From sequence record OP310983.1: DNA of 64,000 bases, one strand, 5' to 3'. The translations under genes and the position numbers were made by a program. This document shows, in pieces, positions 3,182 through 64,000 of this stretch. Within the stretch, counting starts at the first letter, position 1; each line of letters begins with the position of its first letter. Under the pieces are notes generated by a model. It was not told the DNA's origin, did no database searches, and saw only the letters and a list, made by a program, of their open reading frames with translations.

Positions 3182-3319
3182 ATGAATATTGATCCAAAAA
3201 CTTTTGGTATTATTGTTAGCGCCACTATTGGCACCGTAGGTGCTCTTATTCTTACGTATGGTATCGTGAGAGCAGTGCGTGGAAATAATAAACCTGATGT
3301 AAAAGATGTAGCAGAGTAA
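3182..3319 (+). CDS. small single-pass membrane protein (45 aa, not in ORF track)
   Basis: MNIDPKTFGIIVSATIGTVGALILTYGIVRAVRGNNKPDVKDVAE; AGGA RBS; early-promoter-like motif at 3118-3125; terminator at about 3329-3353. Confidence 0.7.
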   Translation: MNIDPKTFGIIVSATIGTVGALILTYGIVRAVRGNNKPDVKDVAE

Positions 3320-3377
3320 GATAACATAGAGCTAGCCCATTAGGGGCTAGCTCTTATATTTATTTTTTTTATTTGTT

Positions 3378-4046
3378 TTAACTTGGGGTACTATAATAAA
3401 TAAATTTAGTTAATTCGGCTTCTTGCTCTTTGATTATATTATTTTTTGTTTGCTTAACATTAATATAAGATTCAATAGATAGCCAACGCTGATCATATTC
3501 GGCTAAGTCATTGAATTCAATTTTCTCGAATCGCCATGACTGAACAGTGGTTCTAATCAGATTACCTGATTTATTAACAATATAACCTTGCATTGTCTCA
3601 AAAAAGTCATCTGCTTTACTAATAACAATAATTAGATATACATCATCTGTGTTTTTAGTATGCATTGATTTTAATTTATAGACACGTGGGTTAAAAGAAT
3701 CAATATCTTTATAATGTTCTTTGATTTCTAGAACAGCATCAATCATCATCTTGGCGCTATTTTGAATACCGTTATTAAGTAGATATTCATTAAGTTCTTT
3801 TAATGAGTCATCACTCAATGATGCTTCGATATGTTCTTCACTTATAGGGTAGTGATAAACTAATTTATTAATAGCTGAATTAACAACATTTAGTTTATCA
3901 ACATCATAAACTTCTAATGTTTGCTTGCCAACTTTTATTTTTAATCCTTTATTTGAATCATTAATAAAGTTGTCTAGATCTACTTCAGTAAAATGAAAAG
4001 CCATTTTAATCACCTTTATGTTTTCCGTAGTGAAGTGAATAAACAC
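3378..4046 (-). CDS. hypothetical protein
   Basis: 222 aa ORF (start probably MAFHF). Confidence 0.8.
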   Translation of the reverse strand: MFIHFTTENIKVIKMAFHFTEVDLDNFINDSNKGLKIKVGKQTLEVYDVDKLNVVNSAINKLVYHYPISEEHIEASLSDDSLKELNEYLLNNGIQNSAKMMIDAVLEIKEHYKDIDSFNPRVYKLKSMHTKNTDDVYLIIVISKADDFFETMQGYIVNKSGNLIRTTVQSWRFEKIEFNDLAEYDQRWLSIESYINVKQTKNNIIKEQEAELTKFIYYSTPS

Positions 4047-4168: not shown

Positions 4169-4627
4169 TTAGCTTTTAAGAACAGGTTTTAATATTAGAT
4201 AAATATAGCAGTTAGCAGTAACTGTGGTTTCAACTACTTTACCATCACTATCGATTGCTAAAAGATTAGATGGATTATTAGTGGATACAGTTGATGATAG
4301 TATTTTATACGAATCTGCTAATCGGATACTAATTAAAGGGCGTTGAGTACGTTTAACTCGACTACAGAAGAATGTTAAAAGGTATTCAGTACACTCTTCT
4401 ATAGTAGGTATACTAACCTCCCAAGTAACATCCTGCATTTCGATATTACGACCTTGTTGAACAGGGCCTCCTAAAGCAGTTATCATTGCACTTGGTAACT
4501 TATCAGTCATGTCACCGGAAGACGCCATTAAACCAGCTTGATATATAGTTACAGCACTAACTAAATATATTGACGCTGTATCGAAAAGAGCTATGTATTT
4601 ATCGCCAATCCCATATGTTACTGGCAC
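4169..4627 (-). CDS. hypothetical protein, start uncertain
   Basis: 152 aa from GTG; the frame stays open about 110 nt further upstream without an ATG. Confidence 0.7.
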   Translation of the reverse strand: MPVTYGIGDKYIALFDTASIYLVSAVTIYQAGLMASSGDMTDKLPSAMITALGGPVQQGRNIEMQDVTWEVSIPTIEECTEYLLTFFCSRVKRTQRPLISIRLADSYKILSSTVSTNNPSNLLAIDSDGKVVETTVTANCYIYLILKPVLKS

Positions 4628-4848
4628 CGCATCTAAATCGGCAAACTTAATAGGTTTACCAGGAGTAGCCGCAATTAATGAATGGGTTGGTTTATTTTCT
4701 GGAACATATGTTTTAGTTAAATGACATACACAAAGCCATTTTTATGACTTCGCGTATGCGTGGCACGTATCTATTAAGATGATACAACTTCATATCATAA
4801 CAACATAAAGCCCTCCGTGATGGAGGGCTTTTATTTTATTTTTATACT

Positions 4849-5373
4849 TTAACTAAAACGAACTACAATTACACTAGTACCAAAAGTATCAGCTACCCAC
4901 TGATTAAATTCTTTATCAGTAATACCTCGTAAATTCAGATTATAAGATGCGTTATCTACAAGTATATAGCGGATATCTGAAAGTAAATTTTCATTAAAGT
5001 CTTTCTGGATCGTTGATAGTCCAGATTTATGGATATAGCTACGTAGTTTAAATGTAGTTAAATATGGAATAATGTTATCTGGTGTTTTGGATAGTTTATC
5101 TTGAGCACCACGTCGAATTCTTTCGTCGGTGAATACTGCCAAACATTCACCAGGGTAGCGTTTTGAAAATTCCATTAATGCTGTAGTACTACCAGATTGA
5201 CGACCAATAAAAAACCCTACTGTTCTATGATCACGTATAGTGATATGACTGACATCATTAAGATGATAATGCATCCCATACTTATTCCAATTCTCATTAG
5301 TTTTATATATCAATGCATCCAGGATAGCCTGGTAATCAACAATAGTTTTTACAAACTGATTTGTGTTATTCAT
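4849..5373 (-). CDS. small P-loop-like protein with degenerate Walker A
   Basis: GFFIGRQSGSTT (Walker A-like, no Lys) and YILVDNAS (Walker B-like). Confidence 0.7.
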   Translation of the reverse strand: MNNTNQFVKTIVDYQAILDALIYKTNENWNKYGMHYHLNDVSHITIRDHRTVGFFIGRQSGSTTALMEFSKRYPGECLAVFTDERIRRGAQDKLSKTPDNIIPYLTTFKLRSYIHKSGLSTIQKDFNENLLSDIRYILVDNASYNLNLRGITDKEFNQWVADTFGTSVIVVRFS

Positions 5374-5664: not shown

Positions 5665-6672
5665 TTAATCGAGAACTAATGGGGCTACTTTAACTTGATA
5701 TATACCAGTTAATAATTGGCTTTTCAACATATATGCTCCACCACCAACCGCCATTTTAGATCCACCTACAATGATCATGCTATTATCCGGACCTTTAGCT
5801 ATAGATGAAATATTAAGGAATCCGATACCTAGTTCAAATGGTTCAGCCCATTTCCGGCGCCTAATATTAAAACGTTGTGCAAACATTTTAGTTACACCGC
5901 CGACATCAACAGCGTTAAGGTAATTAAAATAGTCCCCATCTACATAACCATTACCTTGCCAGATTGTTCCTTTATCAGCAGGTATAATCATCCAAGGTGT
6001 TTGCTCCCATATTAAGGTAGTTGCATTATATCGATAAACTTCAAGATTAGGTATGTTCTTTGTATTATCCCAACCACCAAAATGGTAAAAGTAACCATTA
6101 TAAAAGAATAACTGTTGACCTGAACGAGCACCACCTGAATAGTCTTGCCCGCTAAGCCAAGACTTACTTGATGGTTTTAATCGCATTGCGTTTACGCCAA
6201 TTGGGTTAACGCATAGAATAAGATCATTACCATCTGATGCGGAGGCTGTGCCCCAAAGTGGTACGGGACCACTATATCGCTCAACCCTATTGCCTGTAGC
6301 TATATCAAAATGTTGTATAAAGTTAGATGTTCCCGTACCACCATTACCAGCCGAGTTCCATCCAGTAATACCGCCATAAACAATAAAGTTATTCTTATGT
6401 AATGTCCCAAATCCTAAAGATACCCCTGGTAAGAATGTTCCAGAAGCAGTTGCACCTATATCGGCAAATGGCGATATGGTAAAACGTCTGAACACAGTTG
6501 CAGCTGTTTGTCCTTCAGTATGATGACCAGATCCAACATACAGTGTATTTCCATCCACATATGACATTGTACCAGCTAACGCTACAGGTAGATCACCTAA
6601 TTTAATAATTTCATTAAATCCAACCAAGGGTAACTCTTCGCCTATATCTGGCGATAATAGTAATTCAAACAT
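5665..6672 (-). CDS. Kelch-like beta-propeller protein, probable virion component
   Basis: Repeated hhhhGG motifs (FIVYGG, FYHFGG, MIIVGG, LYVGSG) with downstream aromatic-x-Y/F patterns; TATG late-promoter-like motif upstream. Confidence 0.7.
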   Translation of the reverse strand: MFELLLSPDIGEELPLVGFNEIIKLGDLPVALAGTMSYVDGNTLYVGSGHHTEGQTAATVFRRFTISPFADIGATASGTFLPGVSLGFGTLHKNNFIVYGGITGWNSAGNGGTGTSNFIQHFDIATGNRVERYSGPVPLWGTASASDGNDLILCVNPIGVNAMRLKPSSKSWLSGQDYSGGARSGQQLFFYNGYFYHFGGWDNTKNIPNLEVYRYNATTLIWEQTPWMIIPADKGTIWQGNGYVDGDYFNYLNAVDVGGVTKMFAQRFNIRRRKWAEPFELGIGFLNISSIAKGPDNSMIIVGGSKMAVGGGAYMLKSQLLTGIYQVKVAPLVLD

Positions 6673-6726
6673 GAGTGTGCTCTCAAGTAAATCATTTTAA
6701 TTCATAAGATAACCCATGGCAACATA

Positions 6727-6750
6727 AAAGAGTAGCCGAAGCTACTCTTT
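6727..6750 (-). terminator. intrinsic terminator downstream of the tRNA cluster
   Basis: AAAGAGTAGC-CGAA-GCTACTCTTT (UUCG loop on the minus strand). Confidence 0.75.
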
Positions 6751-6756
6751 AGAATA

Positions 6757-6832
<76 letters not shown>

Positions 6833-6838
6833 ATTAAA

Positions 6839-6915
6839 TGGCGCGCCCAAGGGGACTCGAACCCCTGACCACCCGCGTGACAGGCGGGTATTCTAACCAA
6901 CTGAACTATGAGCGC
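6839..6915 (-). tRNA. tRNA-Asp(GUC)
   Basis: Cloverleaf GCGCTCA...TGGGCGC-G-CCA; anticodon arm CCCGC-CTGTCAC-GCGGG. Confidence 0.97.
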
Positions 6916-6967
6916 AAACGTATGGACATGACTTCCTACATAGTATTACATAACCAGTAATATTTTA

Positions 6968-7315
6968 TTACGGGCGATCAGTCCAGTGCTTGAAATAGTT
7001 ACCATCCTTGGGACGATCGTACTTAGCAAGAATATTTTTAAGTTCTTCGCCGGACAACTTAATACTATCGCCTACTGGGCTATCCAGTTCAGGGCAAGGT
7101 TCAGTTTTACGTGTAATGATTAAATTATCAGTCCCATCTTTGAAGATAAAGATAAACTGCGTTTCATTAGCACTAATCTTTTTCTTAACGCAATGCTTTA
7201 CTTCTGGATGTTTCTTGTGGATCGTTACAAAAGATTCAACAAGAGTTAGCTTTATAAACTCAGGGCTAATAAATGTGAAATATACAGCGCTCTGCGTTGG
7301 GGTTAGATGATCCAT
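6968..7315 (-). CDS. hypothetical protein
   Basis: 115 aa ORF within the tRNA region, in operon orientation. Confidence 0.75.
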   Translation of the reverse strand: MDHLTPTQSAVYFTFISPEFIKLTLVESFVTIHKKHPEVKHCVKKKISANETQFIFIFKDGTDNLIITRKTEPCPELDSPVGDSIKLSGEELKNILAKYDRPKDGNYFKHWTDRP

Positions 7316-7317
7316 AT

Positions 7318-7623
7318 TTACTCCGTATGTTTGAGATAGGCTTTAACTGCTTTAAGACCTTTATTAAAGAACATAGCTTCAACATAAGTAATGTTACTTA
7401 CATCCTCGCCGATAAGTTCCCATTTGATGTAACGTGTAACAGCGTTGATTGTAATATCTAATCCGTTTGGGAATAGGGTTACTTCATCGGTCAGGTGAAT
7501 CCAATCGGGAGCCTTCGCTCCATTACGTAAACGGGGACTAAAAGTAAGATTATAAAGTGTTTGTAATGGTTGTCTCAATAGTTCTTTTTGTTCTTGATGT
7601 TCCATGTATTTTCCTAGAGACAT
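7318..7623 (-). CDS. hypothetical protein
   Basis: 101 aa ORF, tightly packed with neighbours. Confidence 0.75.
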   Translation of the reverse strand: MSLGKYMEHQEQKELLRQPLQTLYNLTFSPRLRNGAKAPDWIHLTDEVTLFPNGLDITINAVTRYIKWELIGEDVSNITYVEAMFFNKGLKAVKAYLKHTE

Positions 7624-7871
7624 TTAAAAATATAAATAGAATGGTTATCTCTTTCGGTTATCTTTAGAGTATTCTCATTTCGAATAACTTCAAGAGACTT
7701 GTATTTATGTTCCAGAATATCCAGATGAGAAATACACTGTTCCCTATTTTCAAATAGGATATTACTTTCATTAGTCGAAATGAAACCAAATAATCCAACT
7801 TTGATAGATAATACCAACATTATTACTGTATTCATGTTTTCCTCAATGAGACAGTATAAAACCTCCCCCAA
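7614..7871 (-). CDS. hypothetical protein with N-terminal hydrophobic segment
   Basis: ORF; probable start MNTVIMLVLSIKVGLFGF. Confidence 0.65.
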   Translation of the reverse strand: MGEVLYCLIEENMNTVIMLVLSIKVGLFGFISTNESNILFENREQCISHLDILEHKYKSLEVIRNENTLKITERDNHSIYIFKCL

Positions 7872-7887
7872 GTGGGAGGCTAGTATA

Positions 7888-7964
7888 TGGTGGGCCCAGC
7901 AGGACTTGAACCTGCGACCAAGCGATTATGAGTCGCCTGCTCTAACCAACTGAGCTATAGGCCC
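7888..7964 (-). tRNA. tRNA with CAU anticodon, probably tRNA-Ile2 (lysidine) rather than Met
   Basis: GGGCCTATAGCTCAGTTGGTTAGAGCAGGCGACTCATAATCGCTTGGTCGCAGGTTCAAGTCCTGCTGGGCCCACCA; the GGCGACTCATAATCGCT arm matches gammaproteobacterial Ile2 tRNAs as I recall them. Confidence 0.93.
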
Positions 7965-7971
7965 TTTTTAT

Positions 7972-8265
7972 TTATTCTGGTAAGAATGTTCCATCTTTTT
8001 GACGGACTAATACACCTGACCATTTGAATGTATTTGTATCACTAGCAGGGCACTCTCTAATTACATTGGTTCTAAATGTGCCATGTGGATAGGTTACAGT
8101 GAATGTAATATGGTTATTACAAACATGTAATACAGAAGACTTTGCTTCTGTTAGATAGTGTAAGCCTTGAGCTAATTGAATATTAGTTAATTCAGGGTCA
8201 CTAAGAATAGCGTAAAGAGCTGTTCCTATAATTTGATGTTCCCATGATATCCATTTATTATCCAT
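7972..8265 (-). CDS. hypothetical protein
   Basis: 97 aa ORF between tRNAs, AGGA RBS. Confidence 0.75.
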   Translation of the reverse strand: MDNKWISWEHQIIGTALYAILSDPELTNIQLAQGLHYLTEAKSSVLHVCNNHITFTVTYPHGTFRTNVIRECPASDTNTFKWSGVLVRQKDGTFLPE

Positions 8266-8286
8266 CCTATTTACCTATTATTAAAA

Positions 8287-8362
8287 TGGTCGGAGTGGGG
8301 AGACTCGAACTCCCGACATCCTGCTCCCAAAGCAGGCGCGCTACCAACTGCGCTACACTCCG
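8287..8362 (-). tRNA. tRNA-Pro(UGG)
   Basis: Cloverleaf CGGAGTG...CACTCCG-A-CCA; anticodon arm CCTGC-TTTGGGA-GCAGG. Confidence 0.97.
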
Positions 8363-8371
8363 TATTTAAAT

Positions 8372-8456
8372 TGGTGCCCGAAGTCGGATTCGAACCGACA
8401 AGACCGTAGCCGGAAGATTTTAAGTCTTCTGTGTTTACCAATTTCACCATTCGGGC
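8372..8456 (-). tRNA. tRNA-Leu(UAA)
   Basis: 85 nt type II tRNA with long variable arm; anticodon arm GAAGA-CTTAAAA-TCTTC. Confidence 0.97.
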
Positions 8457-8514
8457 ATTGTGCTTCAATACATAACATGTAATGCTAGGTATTTTATTAC
8501 AACTTATTTTAAAT

Positions 8515-8967
8515 TCAACGTGGCCATTGTAAAGAAGTTATCTTATTACCATTAATGTAGACATCGGTCACTTCGCACCAATCATTAATTCTGTGTTCAA
8601 TAATTGGAACATCATTTCGGCCAGCCACTCCAATCATATTCCATTTAACATAAATATTCATTAGATCAATTGTTAATTTCTCTTTTATGAGTTTAGGAGA
8701 AATTAATTTAATAATATTAATGTTAAAGAAGTAATTATTAACTTCTTCTAAATATTCATTAGTATTAGTAGTACTAACTTTGCCTTCATGTTCAAGTGAG
8801 GATGGTTTATTCTGATTTACAATATTGCTCACTAGACTTCTTAAAACGGCACTTGCCCTACCAGCTTCGCGTCTTTTATACTTATCATAGTCTTTTACAT
8901 TAGCTGCAATTTTATCAAATTCTTTTTGGGCATAGATTAGCCCTGGTAAAAGTTCATTTTTGATCAT
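8515..8967 (-). CDS. hypothetical protein
   Basis: 150 aa ORF. Confidence 0.8.
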   Translation of the reverse strand: MIKNELLPGLIYAQKEFDKIAANVKDYDKYKRREAGRASAVLRSLVSNIVNQNKPSSLEHEGKVSTTNTNEYLEEVNNYFFNINIIKLISPKLIKEKLTIDLMNIYVKWNMIGVAGRNDVPIIEHRINDWCEVTDVYINGNKITSLQWPR

Positions 8968-9074
8968 GTTATAATTACTCTATTTTATTTATACATATTT
9001 TAAGGTACACTAGTAAAAAAACAAAAAAAAAATATAAAGCCTCCCCGAAGGGAGGCGATATATCGTCATTAATG

Positions 9075-9175
9075 CCCAGCAAAGAGTTTTACTCTCTGGG
9101 AGCCAGTTGGAAGGGGGACTGGCTCCGATTTATTATGACTAATGTAGAAACGAGGGGGAGGGATCATTTCTACAT
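9075..9175 (-). ncRNA. candidate structured 3'UTR/sRNA, three hairpins with C-rich loops
   Basis: Three consecutive stems (see findings) between the stop codon at 9196 and the terminator at about 9039-9056. Confidence 0.4.
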
Positions 9176-9195
9176 ATCATTACATACTCAGTAAG

Positions 9196-11079
9196 TTATT
9201 CTTCAATACCAATGAGCGTATTGCGTTCATTAGTGTTCTCTACGGATGAACCACTTGGGAAGCTACTGATAGACGCTTGCATTAGTTTCAACATATCGAT
9301 AGCAAATACTCGATAGGTAGATTCGACCTTAGCATCGTCGTACGCTGCATGAATGTTAAGAATGATATTATCGGCCCGTTTAGCCAGCAGATATACGTCC
9401 TCAAGAGCATCTTTATCTTTAATAGTGGATAGCTTATGTTTGTAGATATCCCCATTGACAGATAGGTCAGGATACTGGGCTACCCAAGTGTCCGCAATAG
9501 TCTTAGTGTTGTTAGACAGAACGTCAATGATAACGTTAGCTGCTTCCACAATACCGGTAGCATCAAGCAACTTAATCTTAGCACCAGCATTATCTGGCCA
9601 TTTGGGTTCTTGGAAGTTTGTCTTTACATTGGGTTTCCATTCAGCCAGAAGAGTAGCGACTTTCTTAGGGTCTTGCCAATCATTCCCTTTGAACAGATTA
9701 ACCACGGGGGCTAGTATCTTACTGTTCTCATCCAGAACTTTCTGGTTGTGACGATCAGCTTTAGCTACAGCATTAGTGATATTGGCTTTTGCGGTCTTAG
9801 GATCATTAGACGCGAACGTCTCGTAACTCGATACTTTTACTTCGCCGGTTTTAAGCTTTGCTTCTGCCACCCATTTGGCATCACCATAGGTACTTTTCAG
9901 TGTAGCAATAGCTTTCTTCTTTTTATCAAGATTGATCTCAGGGCCAGAGTCGAAGATACTCTTAATGGTGTCGATAAGACCTTCATTTGAGACTTGTATA
10001 AAACCGGGAGTATTAATGATGGACTTCTCTACATACCCGCCACGAATAACTCGATTTATAAAACCATTAAGACCACTACCAGTTTCGGCCATATCTTTCA
10101 TGATTTCTATATTTGTTTCACCAGCACTCTGGGCATTGTATAAATAATAAGAACCATCTTTAAATTTTAGTATAATCCAGTCATCTCCAGTTAGATATGA
10201 ATCAATATTACTATCATTCATACTTTGGTATTTAATGAATTCTGGATTAGTACTTAGTACTTCTTCAATAAACTCTTCTAATGCCGCAGAATTATTAATA
10301 GCATCAACAGGTGGAATTTCACCATCAATGGGTTCAGTAGTTGGACCAGTAACAATGGCAGGTAACGGATCCTCCTCTACAATAACAGTTTCTTCCACTG
10401 GTAGAGCACCACATGAAGCATCAATTAGTTTATTAAAACTACTAATGATCTCACCAAGTGCTACAAGAACTGCTGGCTGTTCAACTTGTTCAACTTTAGC
10501 AATACCAGTTTCTGTAAATTCTTCAGTGATTCGGTTATAAACTTCTACTAGTTGGTTAGTAAGTTCTGCTACTTTTGGCAGAGTCTGCTTAGACAGAGGT
10601 TCAACTACAGTTGTATCTGCTTCAACAAAAATAGAATCATCTTCTTCTAAACGGCTAGTATTAGCTGAGCCAGCTGTGAAGTTATAAGGCATATCTTGAA
10701 TTACTTCATTAATTTCAGATGCCTCCATATCTTCATTTAGACGACCACTATAAGTACGCATCATACCTTCTGCTTCTTTAATAGTGGAATGCGCTAAGCG
10801 TCCCCAATCACCACGCATAATACCGCGCTCGGTAAGACCGCGTGCAGCTGAACCAAGATCAATAGGTTCTTCAATAAATGATTGTTCTTCAACCCACTCC
10901 TCATTACTGTAACATTCTTTTAGAATGGTTTTAAATTTAGTACTAAAGGGTTGTAGAATCTTTTTATCTACTTGTTCAACATTTGTTTTAAAGTGTTCTA
11001 GACTTGGTGTAGCTTTTGAAGATACTTTTTCAGTACCGCTATATAGCGTACGGTTTAGGAAGTTTAGCATTTTATTCAT
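9196..11079 (-). CDS. virion head (inner head/ejection-type) protein, phiKZ gp303-like
   Basis: 627 aa; S/A/G-X-E head-protease sites (SLE, SNE|GLIDTIKSIF); position upstream of nrdB/nrdA matches phiKZ gp303. Confidence 0.7.
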   Translation of the reverse strand: MNKMLNFLNRTLYSGTEKVSSKATPSLEHFKTNVEQVDKKILQPFSTKFKTILKECYSNEEWVEEQSFIEEPIDLGSAARGLTERGIMRGDWGRLAHSTIKEAEGMMRTYSGRLNEDMEASEINEVIQDMPYNFTAGSANTSRLEEDDSIFVEADTTVVEPLSKQTLPKVAELTNQLVEVYNRITEEFTETGIAKVEQVEQPAVLVALGEIISSFNKLIDASCGALPVEETVIVEEDPLPAIVTGPTTEPIDGEIPPVDAINNSAALEEFIEEVLSTNPEFIKYQSMNDSNIDSYLTGDDWIILKFKDGSYYLYNAQSAGETNIEIMKDMAETGSGLNGFINRVIRGGYVEKSIINTPGFIQVSNEGLIDTIKSIFDSGPEINLDKKKKAIATLKSTYGDAKWVAEAKLKTGEVKVSSYETFASNDPKTAKANITNAVAKADRHNQKVLDENSKILAPVVNLFKGNDWQDPKKVATLLAEWKPNVKTNFQEPKWPDNAGAKIKLLDATGIVEAANVIIDVLSNNTKTIADTWVAQYPDLSVNGDIYKHKLSTIKDKDALEDVYLLAKRADNIILNIHAAYDDAKVESTYRVFAIDMLKLMQASISSFPSGSSVENTNERNTLIGIEE

Positions 11080-25393: not shown

Positions 25394-25612
25394 GTGAAGA
25401 AAATGATCTATCTGGGATGGTTTACCATTATCTTTGTTACAATGAGTCTATGTCTGTTTTATGTATTTTGTCACCGTAGTATTCGTGAATCACACCCAGG
25501 TGTAATAGAAAAACAGACTACTCGAAAAATTGTTATTTGGGCTGGTATTCTATTGGCACTCGCTTACTTAAATGAAATCAGCCGAGTCTATATAGAGCAG
25601 ATGGTAACCTAA
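25394..25612 (+). CDS. small 2-TM membrane protein, paralog A
   Basis: MIYLGWFTIIFV...FCHR...GILL.LAYLNEISRV shared with 26996-27205. Confidence 0.8.
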   Translation: MKKMIYLGWFTIIFVTMSLCLFYVFCHRSIRESHPGVIEKQTTRKIVIWAGILLALAYLNEISRVYIEQMVT

Positions 25613-61789: not shown

Positions 61790-63670
61790 ATGGCTGTTAA
61801 CGAAAACGAAATCGGCACCGTTCAAACTCAAGCTACCGCTCCGGCTCCGCAACCCACTGCACAACGTCAAGCTCAACGTCCGGCTGGCGCACCTGGGTCC
61901 ACTACTGGCATTAACCATCTAATGCGTCGCTCTGGTCGGCTAGATGGCTCTGATGCTCGTTCAGCAGATGCCCTACAAGTATTCACTAAAGTAAAAGAAG
62001 AAGCAATCCGCCATCAGGACCTACCTGATGACTTCGATATCCATCGTTTCGATCGCGATGCACAACAAGTGGGTATGGCTGGTCTACTCATTGTTAAACT
62101 AGCTAAAGATATCAATGGTTCCATGAAGGCATTCGTTCGTACTCTAGTACTCGATAACCTACCTGGTACTCGCATCCGTCCCCGTACCCACAAAATCAAC
62201 AATGGTCTAACTGATGACATCATTGAAGAGAAGGTACTACCGCGTGATGTATTCACTGCTCAATACTGGAGCAAGATCGGCGAGTTCCTACGGAACCGTT
62301 ACAACATCCCTGGTCTAGAAGTACTATCTGCCGGTCCCCGTGCAGTGTATGCTGACTTCGACTTCAAAGATGAACTAGCTGTTAAGAACCTACTAGTTGA
62401 ATCTGTTAATATCTGTGAAGATGCTATTGCGCGTCGTAACAATGAGACTCCGTTCTCTATTGCGACCCACATCAAAGCAGAAAACGAACAGCTTACCTGC
62501 AATCTAGACTACAATGGTATTCCGGTTAAAGATAGCTGTGGTAATCCGATCCGTTCTGACCTGGTCATCTCCACTAGCCGTGGTAAGAAAACCAACGTAC
62601 CTGAGAACGAGTTCTATGATACCGATAGCCAGCTAAACCAAGTTAGTCTATTCGTAGATCTACATTGGACTCCGACCACTGGCCAGCAACAAGGCATGTT
62701 TGGCGTAACTCTACCTGGTGCAGTTCTACCTCCGCAGTTCACTCCTTACATCGTTATTACTGACGTTCGTAAGGCGTCCTGGATCCAAGCATGGACTCTA
62801 GAAATGTGGCTGTTCGCGCTTGGTAACGCGTATCGTGCAACTGCATCTCAGGCATGGGCTCGTACTCTAATGCCGAAGATCGCTACTAGTAAGATGCGTG
62901 ATATTGGTGCACTTGGTTATTACTCAGAGCTAGGTAAAGCGATTGAAACTCGCACCGAAGCATTCATGGCAGACGACAGCAACTTCGTAATGCTAATGAA
63001 CAAGATGGTTAACCAGAACCCTGCATTCCAGATCGATGTCGATCCAATGGGAGACAACTCAGCTATTGAGCAAGTCGTCCTAGATGCAGCTGGTGGCGTA
63101 AACCAAGCTCGTGCAGTTAGTCTGATCTTCCAAGCTCTAACTAACCTATACGGCACTGATTTCCGTCAGTTCTATAATCTAGCTGAAGCTGGTCCGATTA
63201 TCTTTGACAACCATCATGAAGTAGACCTCGGTCACTACACTGATGAGCATGGTGAACTAAGCGACCGTCGTGATCTCGACGTTCTAGGTGCCATGAACAT
63301 GTCTGAAGGTAATGACCAAGAGTGGAAGACCTGGTACGCTACTCAGGTAGGTAATGACCACATTGTGCGTCGTATGAATAACAGTAAAGGCTTCGACAAG
63401 ATGTACCTAGGTAACGTTACCTATACTGGTCGTGCTCGTCGTCTAACCTTTAACCCGAAATTCATCACCGCAATGGATGCCGCAGCAGCAGCAGCTGGTG
63501 TAACTGTAACCATGGAAAACCTAATTACCAACTTCGGTCAACAGCGCTTCGCTGGTTACACCGGTATGGGTAACATGGCTGTTTCTGGTAGTGCACAAGT
63601 TGGCATGGCTGGCAGCATGGGTCAAACTTACGGCGCTCCTTCCTATAATGCACCGGGTACCTGGTACTAA
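61790..63670 (+). CDS. chmA: chimallin / phage nuclear shell protein (gp54, PhuN)
   Basis: 626 aa; disordered Q/A/P N-terminus, core motifs FDRD, G.P.RSDL, QFTP.IVIT, RRLTFNP.FI, Gly/Met-rich C-tail; syntenic with DNA polymerase and phuZ. Confidence 0.93.
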
Positions 63671-64000
63671 TAGGAAATACCTCGGTAGATAGGGATGTTA
63701 AATAAGTAACATCCCGATTCTAATACTGCGACCCTGGTTCACTTCGGTGATAACGGTTAGGAGTAGGTTCCGTGAAGTAATCGACTAGTGGACTTAGTCT
63801 AGGTCGACCTATCACTACACGAGGATGATAGATCACTTAACCGAAAGGAGTTACTCAAAAGGTGACGTGTGATCAAAAACTACAATGGATGGTAAATGAT
63901 ACTAGTGCCGGTATGCTACAGAGAAGAGCGGAGGTTAAGCTTTGTAGATGACGCTAGGATCGGGCCAGGCTCCGTTGGTGGTCCATTGTAAAAACTGATA
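63671..64000 (+). ncRNA. candidate large structured non-coding RNA (may run past the window end)
   Basis: No ORF over about 31 codons; at least eight helices, with cUUCGg and cGAAAg tetraloops and G-U pairs reading on the + strand. Confidence 0.6.

Follow-up and report, generated by a model that had tools for sequence, protein, structure and literature searches.

Several non-coding RNA candidates have been described in untranslated regions of highly expressed P. aeruginosa phage transcripts, among them ncRNA1 and ncRNA2 of PAK_P3, and 3'UTR_PHIKZ298 and 5'UTR_gp40 of phiKZ. These candidates are 90-210 nt long and were found by expression, and no multi-domain fold has been described for them. 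Much larger RNAs of phages and prophages are known as GOLLD and ROOL. They have multi-junction structures that are supported by covariation and often lie beside tRNA genes, and their biochemical role is not established. Little is known about the non-coding RNAs of nucleus-forming phages. As these phages shield their DNA from host defences, their RNAs are the exposed layer of infection.

The RNA element that we describe here lies directly downstream of the chmA gene of a phiKZ-like phage. It shares with the PAK_P3 and phiKZ candidates the location in an untranslated region of a highly expressed transcript, the conservation within a genus and the lack of a promoter of its own. It differs from them in that it is ~330 nt long, has three modules and was found by sequence and covariation, its expression being documented indirectly and for PhiPA3 only. 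The likeness to GOLLD and ROOL extends to the neighbourhood, as a type B relative also adjoins a tRNA gene, but the element is smaller than GOLLD and ROOL, has no Rfam match, resides inside an mRNA 3'UTR and has so far appeared in three clades of P. aeruginosa giant phages only. It is a new RNA family, a UTR-embedded phage non-coding RNA of unusual size, modularity and exchange.

The last 2.3 kb of the window, i.e., of the whole stretch of 64,000 nucleotides that was analyzed, match the end of the record of Pseudomonas phage Koomba boorn-mokiny kep-wari Wadjak 1 (OP310983.1) with 100% identity, and are 98-99.7% identical to phiKZ and ~45 other Phikzvirus records. The features at its end and just beyond are the following:

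61790..63670, + strand: chmA, the gene for chimallin, the phage-nucleus shell protein (Pfam PF25677, 1119.8 bits, positions 1-626 of 627; ORF list)
63671..64000, + strand: type A chmA 3'UTR RNA element (fold z, covariation, identity to Pawinskivirus, R1 and R2 matches)
127-175 at the record start of the window phage, 6296-6345 in the phiKZ locus: hairpin-plus-U7 terminator (folding, sequence)

The chmA gene ends in tandem stop codons (TAA TAG at 63668-73). In phiKZ, 394 nt separate the chmA stop from the start of the next gene, gp55, which encodes an RNA polymerase subunit, and positions 63671-64000 correspond to the first 330 nt of this spacer. The last 126 bases of the window phage record (window 63875-64000) recur as its bases 1-126. 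The repeat reflects an overlap in the assembly of a circularly permuted genome and explains why the RNA element is cut by the window end. The complete type A element extends ~2 nt past the window end and is then closed off by the terminator. The statement of the preliminary description that chmA lacks a U-tailed terminator is therefore an artefact of the window end: according to the record start of the same phage and to all relatives, a hairpin of ~14 bp with a U7 tract starts 2 nt after base 64000. A simple terminator scan did not call this hairpin, because the U7 starts 3 nt after the extended stem; folding of the full-length phiKZ copy places it clearly. The ribosome-binding site and ATG of gp55 follow ~20 nt after the terminator in the window phage, and the phiKZ layout is identical.

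The RNA element thus occupies the stretch that follows the chmA stop codon and precedes the intrinsic terminator of this transcription unit, the position by which a 3'UTR-derived RNA is recognized. It therefore would be co-transcribed with the shell gene, as had been proposed. According to the phiKZ transcriptome literature, chmA is driven by an early and a middle promoter. The region had also been described as GC-richer. This holds in comparison with the region upstream (GC content 0.445 versus 0.27-0.36), but not in comparison with chmA itself (0.44-0.485).

Positions 63671-64000 encode most of a ~330-nt folded RNA of three modules, the helices of which are held by compensatory substitutions. 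Consensus folds obtained by alifold have the following parts:

63681..63823, + strand: 5' domain, a four-way junction (alifold; 10 compensatory pairs)
63681-84/63820-23, + strand: P1, closing the 5' domain (alifold; double-sided change)
63686-89/63719-22, + strand: P2 (alifold; double-sided change)
63692-63700/63707-63715, + strand: hairpin P2a inside P2 (alifold; double-sided change)
63726-63766, + strand: P3, capped by UUCG (63739-42/63747-50) (alifold)
63772-77/63809-15, + strand: P4 (alifold; double-sided change)
63781-93/63797-807, + strand: hairpin P4a inside P4 (alifold; double-sided change)
63831..63874, + strand: three-way junction module with closing helix 63831-36/63869-74 (alifold)
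63841-48, + strand: 2-bp GAAA-capped hairpin of the three-way junction, CC-GAAA-GG (alifold)
63850-55/63861-66, + strand: second hairpin of the three-way junction (compensatory change in HPP-Temi)
63883..63988, + strand: 3' domain with closing helix 63883-90/63981-88 (9 compensatory pairs)
63898-907/63952-61, + strand: long helix of the 3' domain (alifold)
63914-23/63940-50, + strand: apical helix of the 3' domain, with invariant loop (alifold)
63927-33 in the apical loop with 63970-76, + strand: candidate pseudoknot of 7 bp (complementarity)

Five local structures had been recognized by eye, namely the helices at 63692-715, 63739-50 and 63781-807, the three-way junction and the 3' domain. All of them are kept across relatives, most with compensatory changes; for the closing helix of the three-way junction such a change is seen in PhiPA3. 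The 3' domain is built from two long helices, stacked on each other, and an apical loop that is invariant. Other pairings in the preliminary description fared less well. Its CTATCA/TGATAG hairpin (63809-31) is broken in the four Pawinskivirus sequences, and a competing helix is preferred, 63772-74/63813-15 in P4, which is 100% paired and has undergone a compensatory change from U-A to C-G. The two long-range pairings that it considered (63733-40 with 63962-69, and 63713-20 with 63957-64) show no compensatory change, and each natural substitution breaks a pair. The candidate pseudoknot in the 3' domain is one that we infer from complementarity between 63927-33 and 63970-76 in 11 of 11 phiKZ-like and Pawinskivirus sequences, in which both partners are invariant; in PhiPA3 the partners are absent or changed. 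We also considered a UUAA pairing between junction and loop, which was dropped as a palindromic 4-mer that conflicts with supported helices and is lost in PhiPA3.

Folding energies and substitution patterns agree that a large structured RNA is encoded on the + strand downstream of chmA. Positions 63671-64000 of this strand fold with a minimum free energy of -96.9 kcal/mol and z = -2.46 (1 of 100 shuffles as good), compared to z = -1.41 for the - strand, and the complete phiKZ RNA including the terminator has z = -3.93 (0 of 100 shuffles). Because ~13 conserved G-U pairs would become C-A on the opposite strand, the RNA was assigned to the + strand. A comparison of relatives, which had been proposed as a check, yielded a total of 19 compensatory pairs (10 in the 5' half and 9 in the 3' half) versus 2-4 in controls. 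Of the 50 consensus pairs in the 3' half, 9 were changed on both sides versus 2.0 +/- 1.1 in column shuffles (0 of 500), and for the 5' half with its 46 pairs the numbers were 10 versus 3.8 +/- 1.2 (0 of 500); the sample comprises three clades, and column shuffles do not remove phylogenetic relatedness. When partners were slid by 1-3 columns, 0-2 compensatory pairs were left in the 3' half, and the proportion of paired cells was 29-46% instead of 96%. Sliding in the 5' half likewise left 0-2 compensatory pairs. The slid controls and pairwise counts agree with the shuffle result. Between phiKZ and PA1C, 13 pairs differ, of which 12 are still paired, 6 of them via double changes, and divergence amounts to 10% in paired columns versus 22% in unpaired columns. 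A G-C to U-A swap in the 3' domain even distinguishes the window phage from phiKZ, despite 98% identity between the two. Compensatory changes, together with a divergence that is lower in paired than in unpaired columns, show that selection on the fold continues. Because the 3' domain model accommodates PhiPA3 badly and leaves many non-standard pairs, the structures that are secure in all three clades are limited to P1, P2, P4 and the three-way junction.

The same substitutions bear on the possibility that the region codes for one or more small proteins. Open reading frames of 31 amino acids (+ strand) and 38 amino acids (- strand) do exist, and some records annotate hypothetical proteins. However, neither frame is conserved, in line with the original statement that chmA is not followed by an ORF. 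Start codons differ even within the genus (the ATG of the 31-aa frame at 63896 is missing in SL2, PA7 and Pawinskivirus), and substitutions track base-pairing rather than codon structure, so that we give a coding role almost no credence.

The element had been said not to resemble tRNA, tmRNA, RNase P, SRP or group I/II intron cores, and a search of Rfam had been recommended. Covariance-model searches with Rfam 15, the scope of which includes RNase P, SRP, 6S, GOLLD, ROOL, HEARO, riboswitches and self-cleaving ribozymes, matched no family to the element (E<=1 in window 62500-64000, E<=5 in phiKZ 5800-9300, E<=1 in seven related loci). ARAGORN found 0 tRNA or tmRNA genes in phiKZ 5800-6500 and in 7 related loci. 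As a positive control, the same Rfam searches detected the true group I intron downstream with 75.6 and 81.1 bits. The group I intron model (RF00028, gathering score 50 bits) was considered for the element itself and rejected, as the catalytic core P3-P9 is not matched. An intron of chmA was rejected as well, since chmA is complete and ends as it does in relatives without the element.

Two covariance models were built from the type A sequences, R1 for the three-way junction and 3' domain (172 positions) and R2 for the 5' domain (161 positions). The window scores 186.2 bits with R1 and 192.2 bits with R2, each model matching only here in the window, PhiPA3 scores 59.8 and 74.8 bits, and phiHQ is matched by R1 only (191.3 bits); sequences used in training match by construction. 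No match to R1 or R2 was found in Psa21, 201phi2-1, Phabio, Viktualia, D6, Noxifer and RP13. Wider searches added little. When IMG/VR was scanned for chimallin proteins, the matches were limited to PA7, PhiPA3 and one contig of 39% identity, and nothing was returned from JGI metagenomes. In IMG/VR, the P2 motif occurs in PA7 and PhiPA3 only. The three-way-junction motif was found in 21 stretches, and besides contigs of PA7 and PhiPA3 none of these was significant with R1 (best E 0.039, junction part only). A two-block motif scan of metagenomes gave 9 stretches, all by chance within unrelated sequence and similar to the number expected by chance, and motif scans of 185,579 bacterial genomes gave nothing. 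The type A family therefore appears, so far, to be confined to three clades of P. aeruginosa giant phages, the phiKZ-like phages, Pawinskivirus and PhiPA3.

Homologous spacers are 95-100% identical among Phikzvirus and 84-85% identical in six Pawinskivirus-like phages (e.g., PA1C, HPP-Temi and PS119XW). One half of the spacer is found in phiHQ, and PhiPA3 has it in diverged form. Between phiKZ and PA1C, the spacer is 85% identical at the nucleotide level, compared to 65% for chmA (49% at the amino acid level) and 67% for gp55 (67% at the amino acid level). The RNA thus is much better conserved than either of its two neighbours, both of them essential genes. The flanking genes of PA1C are nearer to those of PhiPA3 (71% and 77% nucleotide identity) than to those of phiKZ, whereas its RNA is nearer to that of phiKZ (85%) than to that of PhiPA3 (70%). 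This conflict is most readily accounted for by horizontal exchange in addition to selection, and the high identity between phiKZ and Pawinskivirus could in part reflect recent transfer rather than constraint alone. The flanks of phiHQ are 99.8-99.9% identical to those of PA1C, and the two phages have the three-way junction and the 3' domain in common, but in place of the 5' domain phiHQ carries ~310 nt of another RNA, which we term type B, with the swap junction just 5' of the three-way junction module. D6 and Noxifer keep chmA, terminator and gp55 and have only ~35 nt plus the terminator in the spacer; the flanks of D6 and Psa21 are 82-84% identical. The element thus behaves as a cassette, which some of the related giant phages have, others lack and others have exchanged, and this pattern marks the interval from the chmA stop to its terminator as a hotspot for gain, loss and recombination of RNA cassettes.

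A patchy distribution, and a similarity pattern in conflict with the flanks, would also be expected if the element were a functionless, decaying remnant of a selfish element such as an old intron or ribozyme, which recombination or gene conversion around the gp55 homing-endonuclease intron had carried along. A mobile group I intron is indeed present 1.3-2.3 kb downstream. Intron and element are both structured, similar in size, patchy and part of the same gene cluster. Yet the intron is a true RF00028 match that splits a coding sequence, while the element follows a complete ORF, hence has no exon context, and does not match the group I model in searches that recover the true intron. Moreover, Pawinskivirus carries the RNA and has an uninterrupted gp55, and the evidence for continuing selection on the fold is at odds with decay. 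We therefore consider a remnant improbable.

Other phages have other RNAs at the same site or related RNAs at other sites. The type B RNA is present at the following loci:

Psa21 locus ~4256-4640: type B RNA, filling the chmA 3'UTR
phiHQ locus 3194-3503: type B RNA
RP13 ~2418-2597: type B RNA

The copy in Ralstonia phage RP13 has 82% identity and is separated by 9 nt from the tRNA-Leu that follows it. RP13 is not a chimallivirus but a member of another group of phages, with hypermodified DNA (PMC12686479). Its record has a second, putative match. Type B copies are 73-82% identical, and among the three sequences 9 of 20 predicted pairs are compensatory. Searches of the related loci and RP13 gave no Rfam match for type B, and a type B motif scan gave 30 stretches, all chance except Psa21. 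In 201phi2-1 (4259-5132), Phabio (4253-4886) and Viktualia (4262-4942), the spacers between chmA and gp55 are long and have a GAAA-capped hairpin right after the stop, followed by further hairpin-rich sequence and small ORFs (188, 90 and 110 aa), for which there is no family in PHROGs. A three-way junction common to types A, B and C was considered and is unsupported, the only similarity being 21 nt between phiKZ and Psa21 with an E-value of 0.009 in a tiny search space.

Published binding data for a homologue are available. High eCLIP coverage of ChmC was reported between chmA (gp53) and gp54 of PhiPA3, and the authors suggest one or more small regulatory RNAs bound by ChmC, describing neither a structure nor a family (Enustun et al., 2024; PMC11077065). 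The PhiPA3 spacer between gp53 and gp54 is the homologue of the element in the window, which hence offers a sequence-defined explanation for the eCLIP peaks. The RNA had been called undescribed in the preliminary description; this holds for its structure and family, but not for the coverage of the PhiPA3 spacer. ChmC shows little sequence specificity according to the same study (PMC11077065), and the peaks may reflect abundance only. No RNA is listed at this spacer in the publications on phiKZ dRNA-seq, Grad-seq and ONT-cappable-seq, nor in those on ribosome targeting and transposons. A second spacer with ChmC eCLIP peaks, between gp203 and gp204 of PhiPA3 (25482-25610 of a 40-kb stretch), is 129 nt long only, and R2 has no match on the 40-kb stretch that holds it.

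What could the RNA do? We favor a model, to which we assign a probability of about 0.5, in which the element is the tail of the chmA mRNA, ends at the terminator and is a self-contained, probably protein-bound accessory RNA, the role of which relates to P. aeruginosa as host or to competition between its giant phages. Transcription of chmA would continue into the element, so that the RNA would form the tail of the abundant chmA transcript. The terminator would fix and protect its 3' end. The RNA would then bind protein and act in a self-contained manner, be it as part of the mRNA or after release. The one candidate protein partner on record is ChmC. The restriction to P. aeruginosa phages and the horizontal exchange suggest a host-specific accessory role.

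The eCLIP peaks, and the role of ChmC that has been implicated in mRNA handling at the phage nucleus, are also what one would expect if the element were a cis-acting domain of the chmA 3'UTR, the fold and ChmC together stabilizing the shell mRNA or steering its export or site of translation. The location inside the chmA transcription unit upstream of the terminator fits with such a role, and so do the long structured chmA 3'UTRs of other sequence types in other Pseudomonas chimalliviruses. A scaffold or an export or localization signal for chmA had been proposed from the start, but the comparison of relatives weakens this idea. D6 and Noxifer lack the element despite the same gene order and make do with the ~35 nt and terminator, the same site can hold non-homologous RNAs that are not matched by R1 and R2, the 5' domain is swapped in phiHQ, and type B adjoins a tRNA gene in RP13, outside of the chimalliviruses. 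In addition, a terminator hairpin alone is normally enough to protect the 3' end of a transcript. A cis-acting role is possible, but we think it rather unlikely.

The next gene has been considered as a target as well. Like riboswitch and attenuator leaders, the locus presents a folded RNA, then an intrinsic terminator (hairpin and U7) and within ~20 nt a gene start, with ribosome-binding site and ATG. The fold could then sense a signal and set terminator read-through into the RNA polymerase subunit gene, in the spirit of the translational switch for this gene that had been envisaged. The stretch from the terminator to gp55 shows no evident promoter, and in 201phi2-1 the gp55 homologue was found to have none of its own (PMC11512511), which fits with read-through from chmA. 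In contrast to riboswitch and attenuator leaders, the element matches no aptamer, riboswitch or T-box model, an unpaired A-rich linker separates the fold from the terminator, and the consensus and minimum free energy folds contain no conserved alternative pairing that would compete with the terminator. Above all, a terminator with 80-97% identity precedes gp55 and its leader in phages that have no such RNA or have unrelated RNAs. For these reasons riboswitch and attenuator were rejected as identities of the element, and control of gp55 by its fold appears very improbable. The conservation of the terminator was assessed for the loci of the window phage, phiKZ, phiHQ, Psa21, 201phi2-1, Viktualia and three further ones. 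It holds across several genera where the flanking genes are only ~65% identical, and the bases that separate the stem from the U tract are conserved as well.

Compared to an accessory RNA, a dedicated regulator of chmA or gp55 is less likely, because relatives manage both genes without the RNA, because non-homologous RNAs replace it, and because type B occurs outside of the chimallin and phage-nucleus context. The accessory RNA model has a bolder version. The element could represent a new class of large structured RNA in P. aeruginosa nucleus-forming phages, exchanged among them, bound by ChmC, expressed via the mRNA of the shell protein and endowed with an activity of its own. This we regard as doubtful at present. 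If true, the activity might, for example, consist in RNA-protein assembly at the phage nucleus, or in distracting, as a decoy, an RNase or an RNA-directed defence of the host. More generally, a large RNA with a selected fold on the transcript of the family-defining gene, better conserved than chmA itself and exchanged between co-infecting lineages, is a candidate for host interaction at the RNA level or for phage-nucleus organization.

Some observations on gp55, a subunit of the non-virion RNA polymerase, were made along the way. The gene is split by a group I intron (phiKZ locus 6366-9204; window phage record 192-2152). The intact PA1C homologue aligns to phiKZ 6420-7622 and, with 87% identity, to 8980-9192, and the latter stretch is annotated separately as PHIKZ056.1. 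In phiKZ, the RF00028 match (8611-8932) follows the HNH gene gp56; in the window phage, the gp55 intron is without HNH gene and the match is at 1545-1865 (81.1 bits). One long-read study found no spliced gp55 reads. The native gp55 protein has been reported as 56 kDa, larger than the 420-aa annotation.
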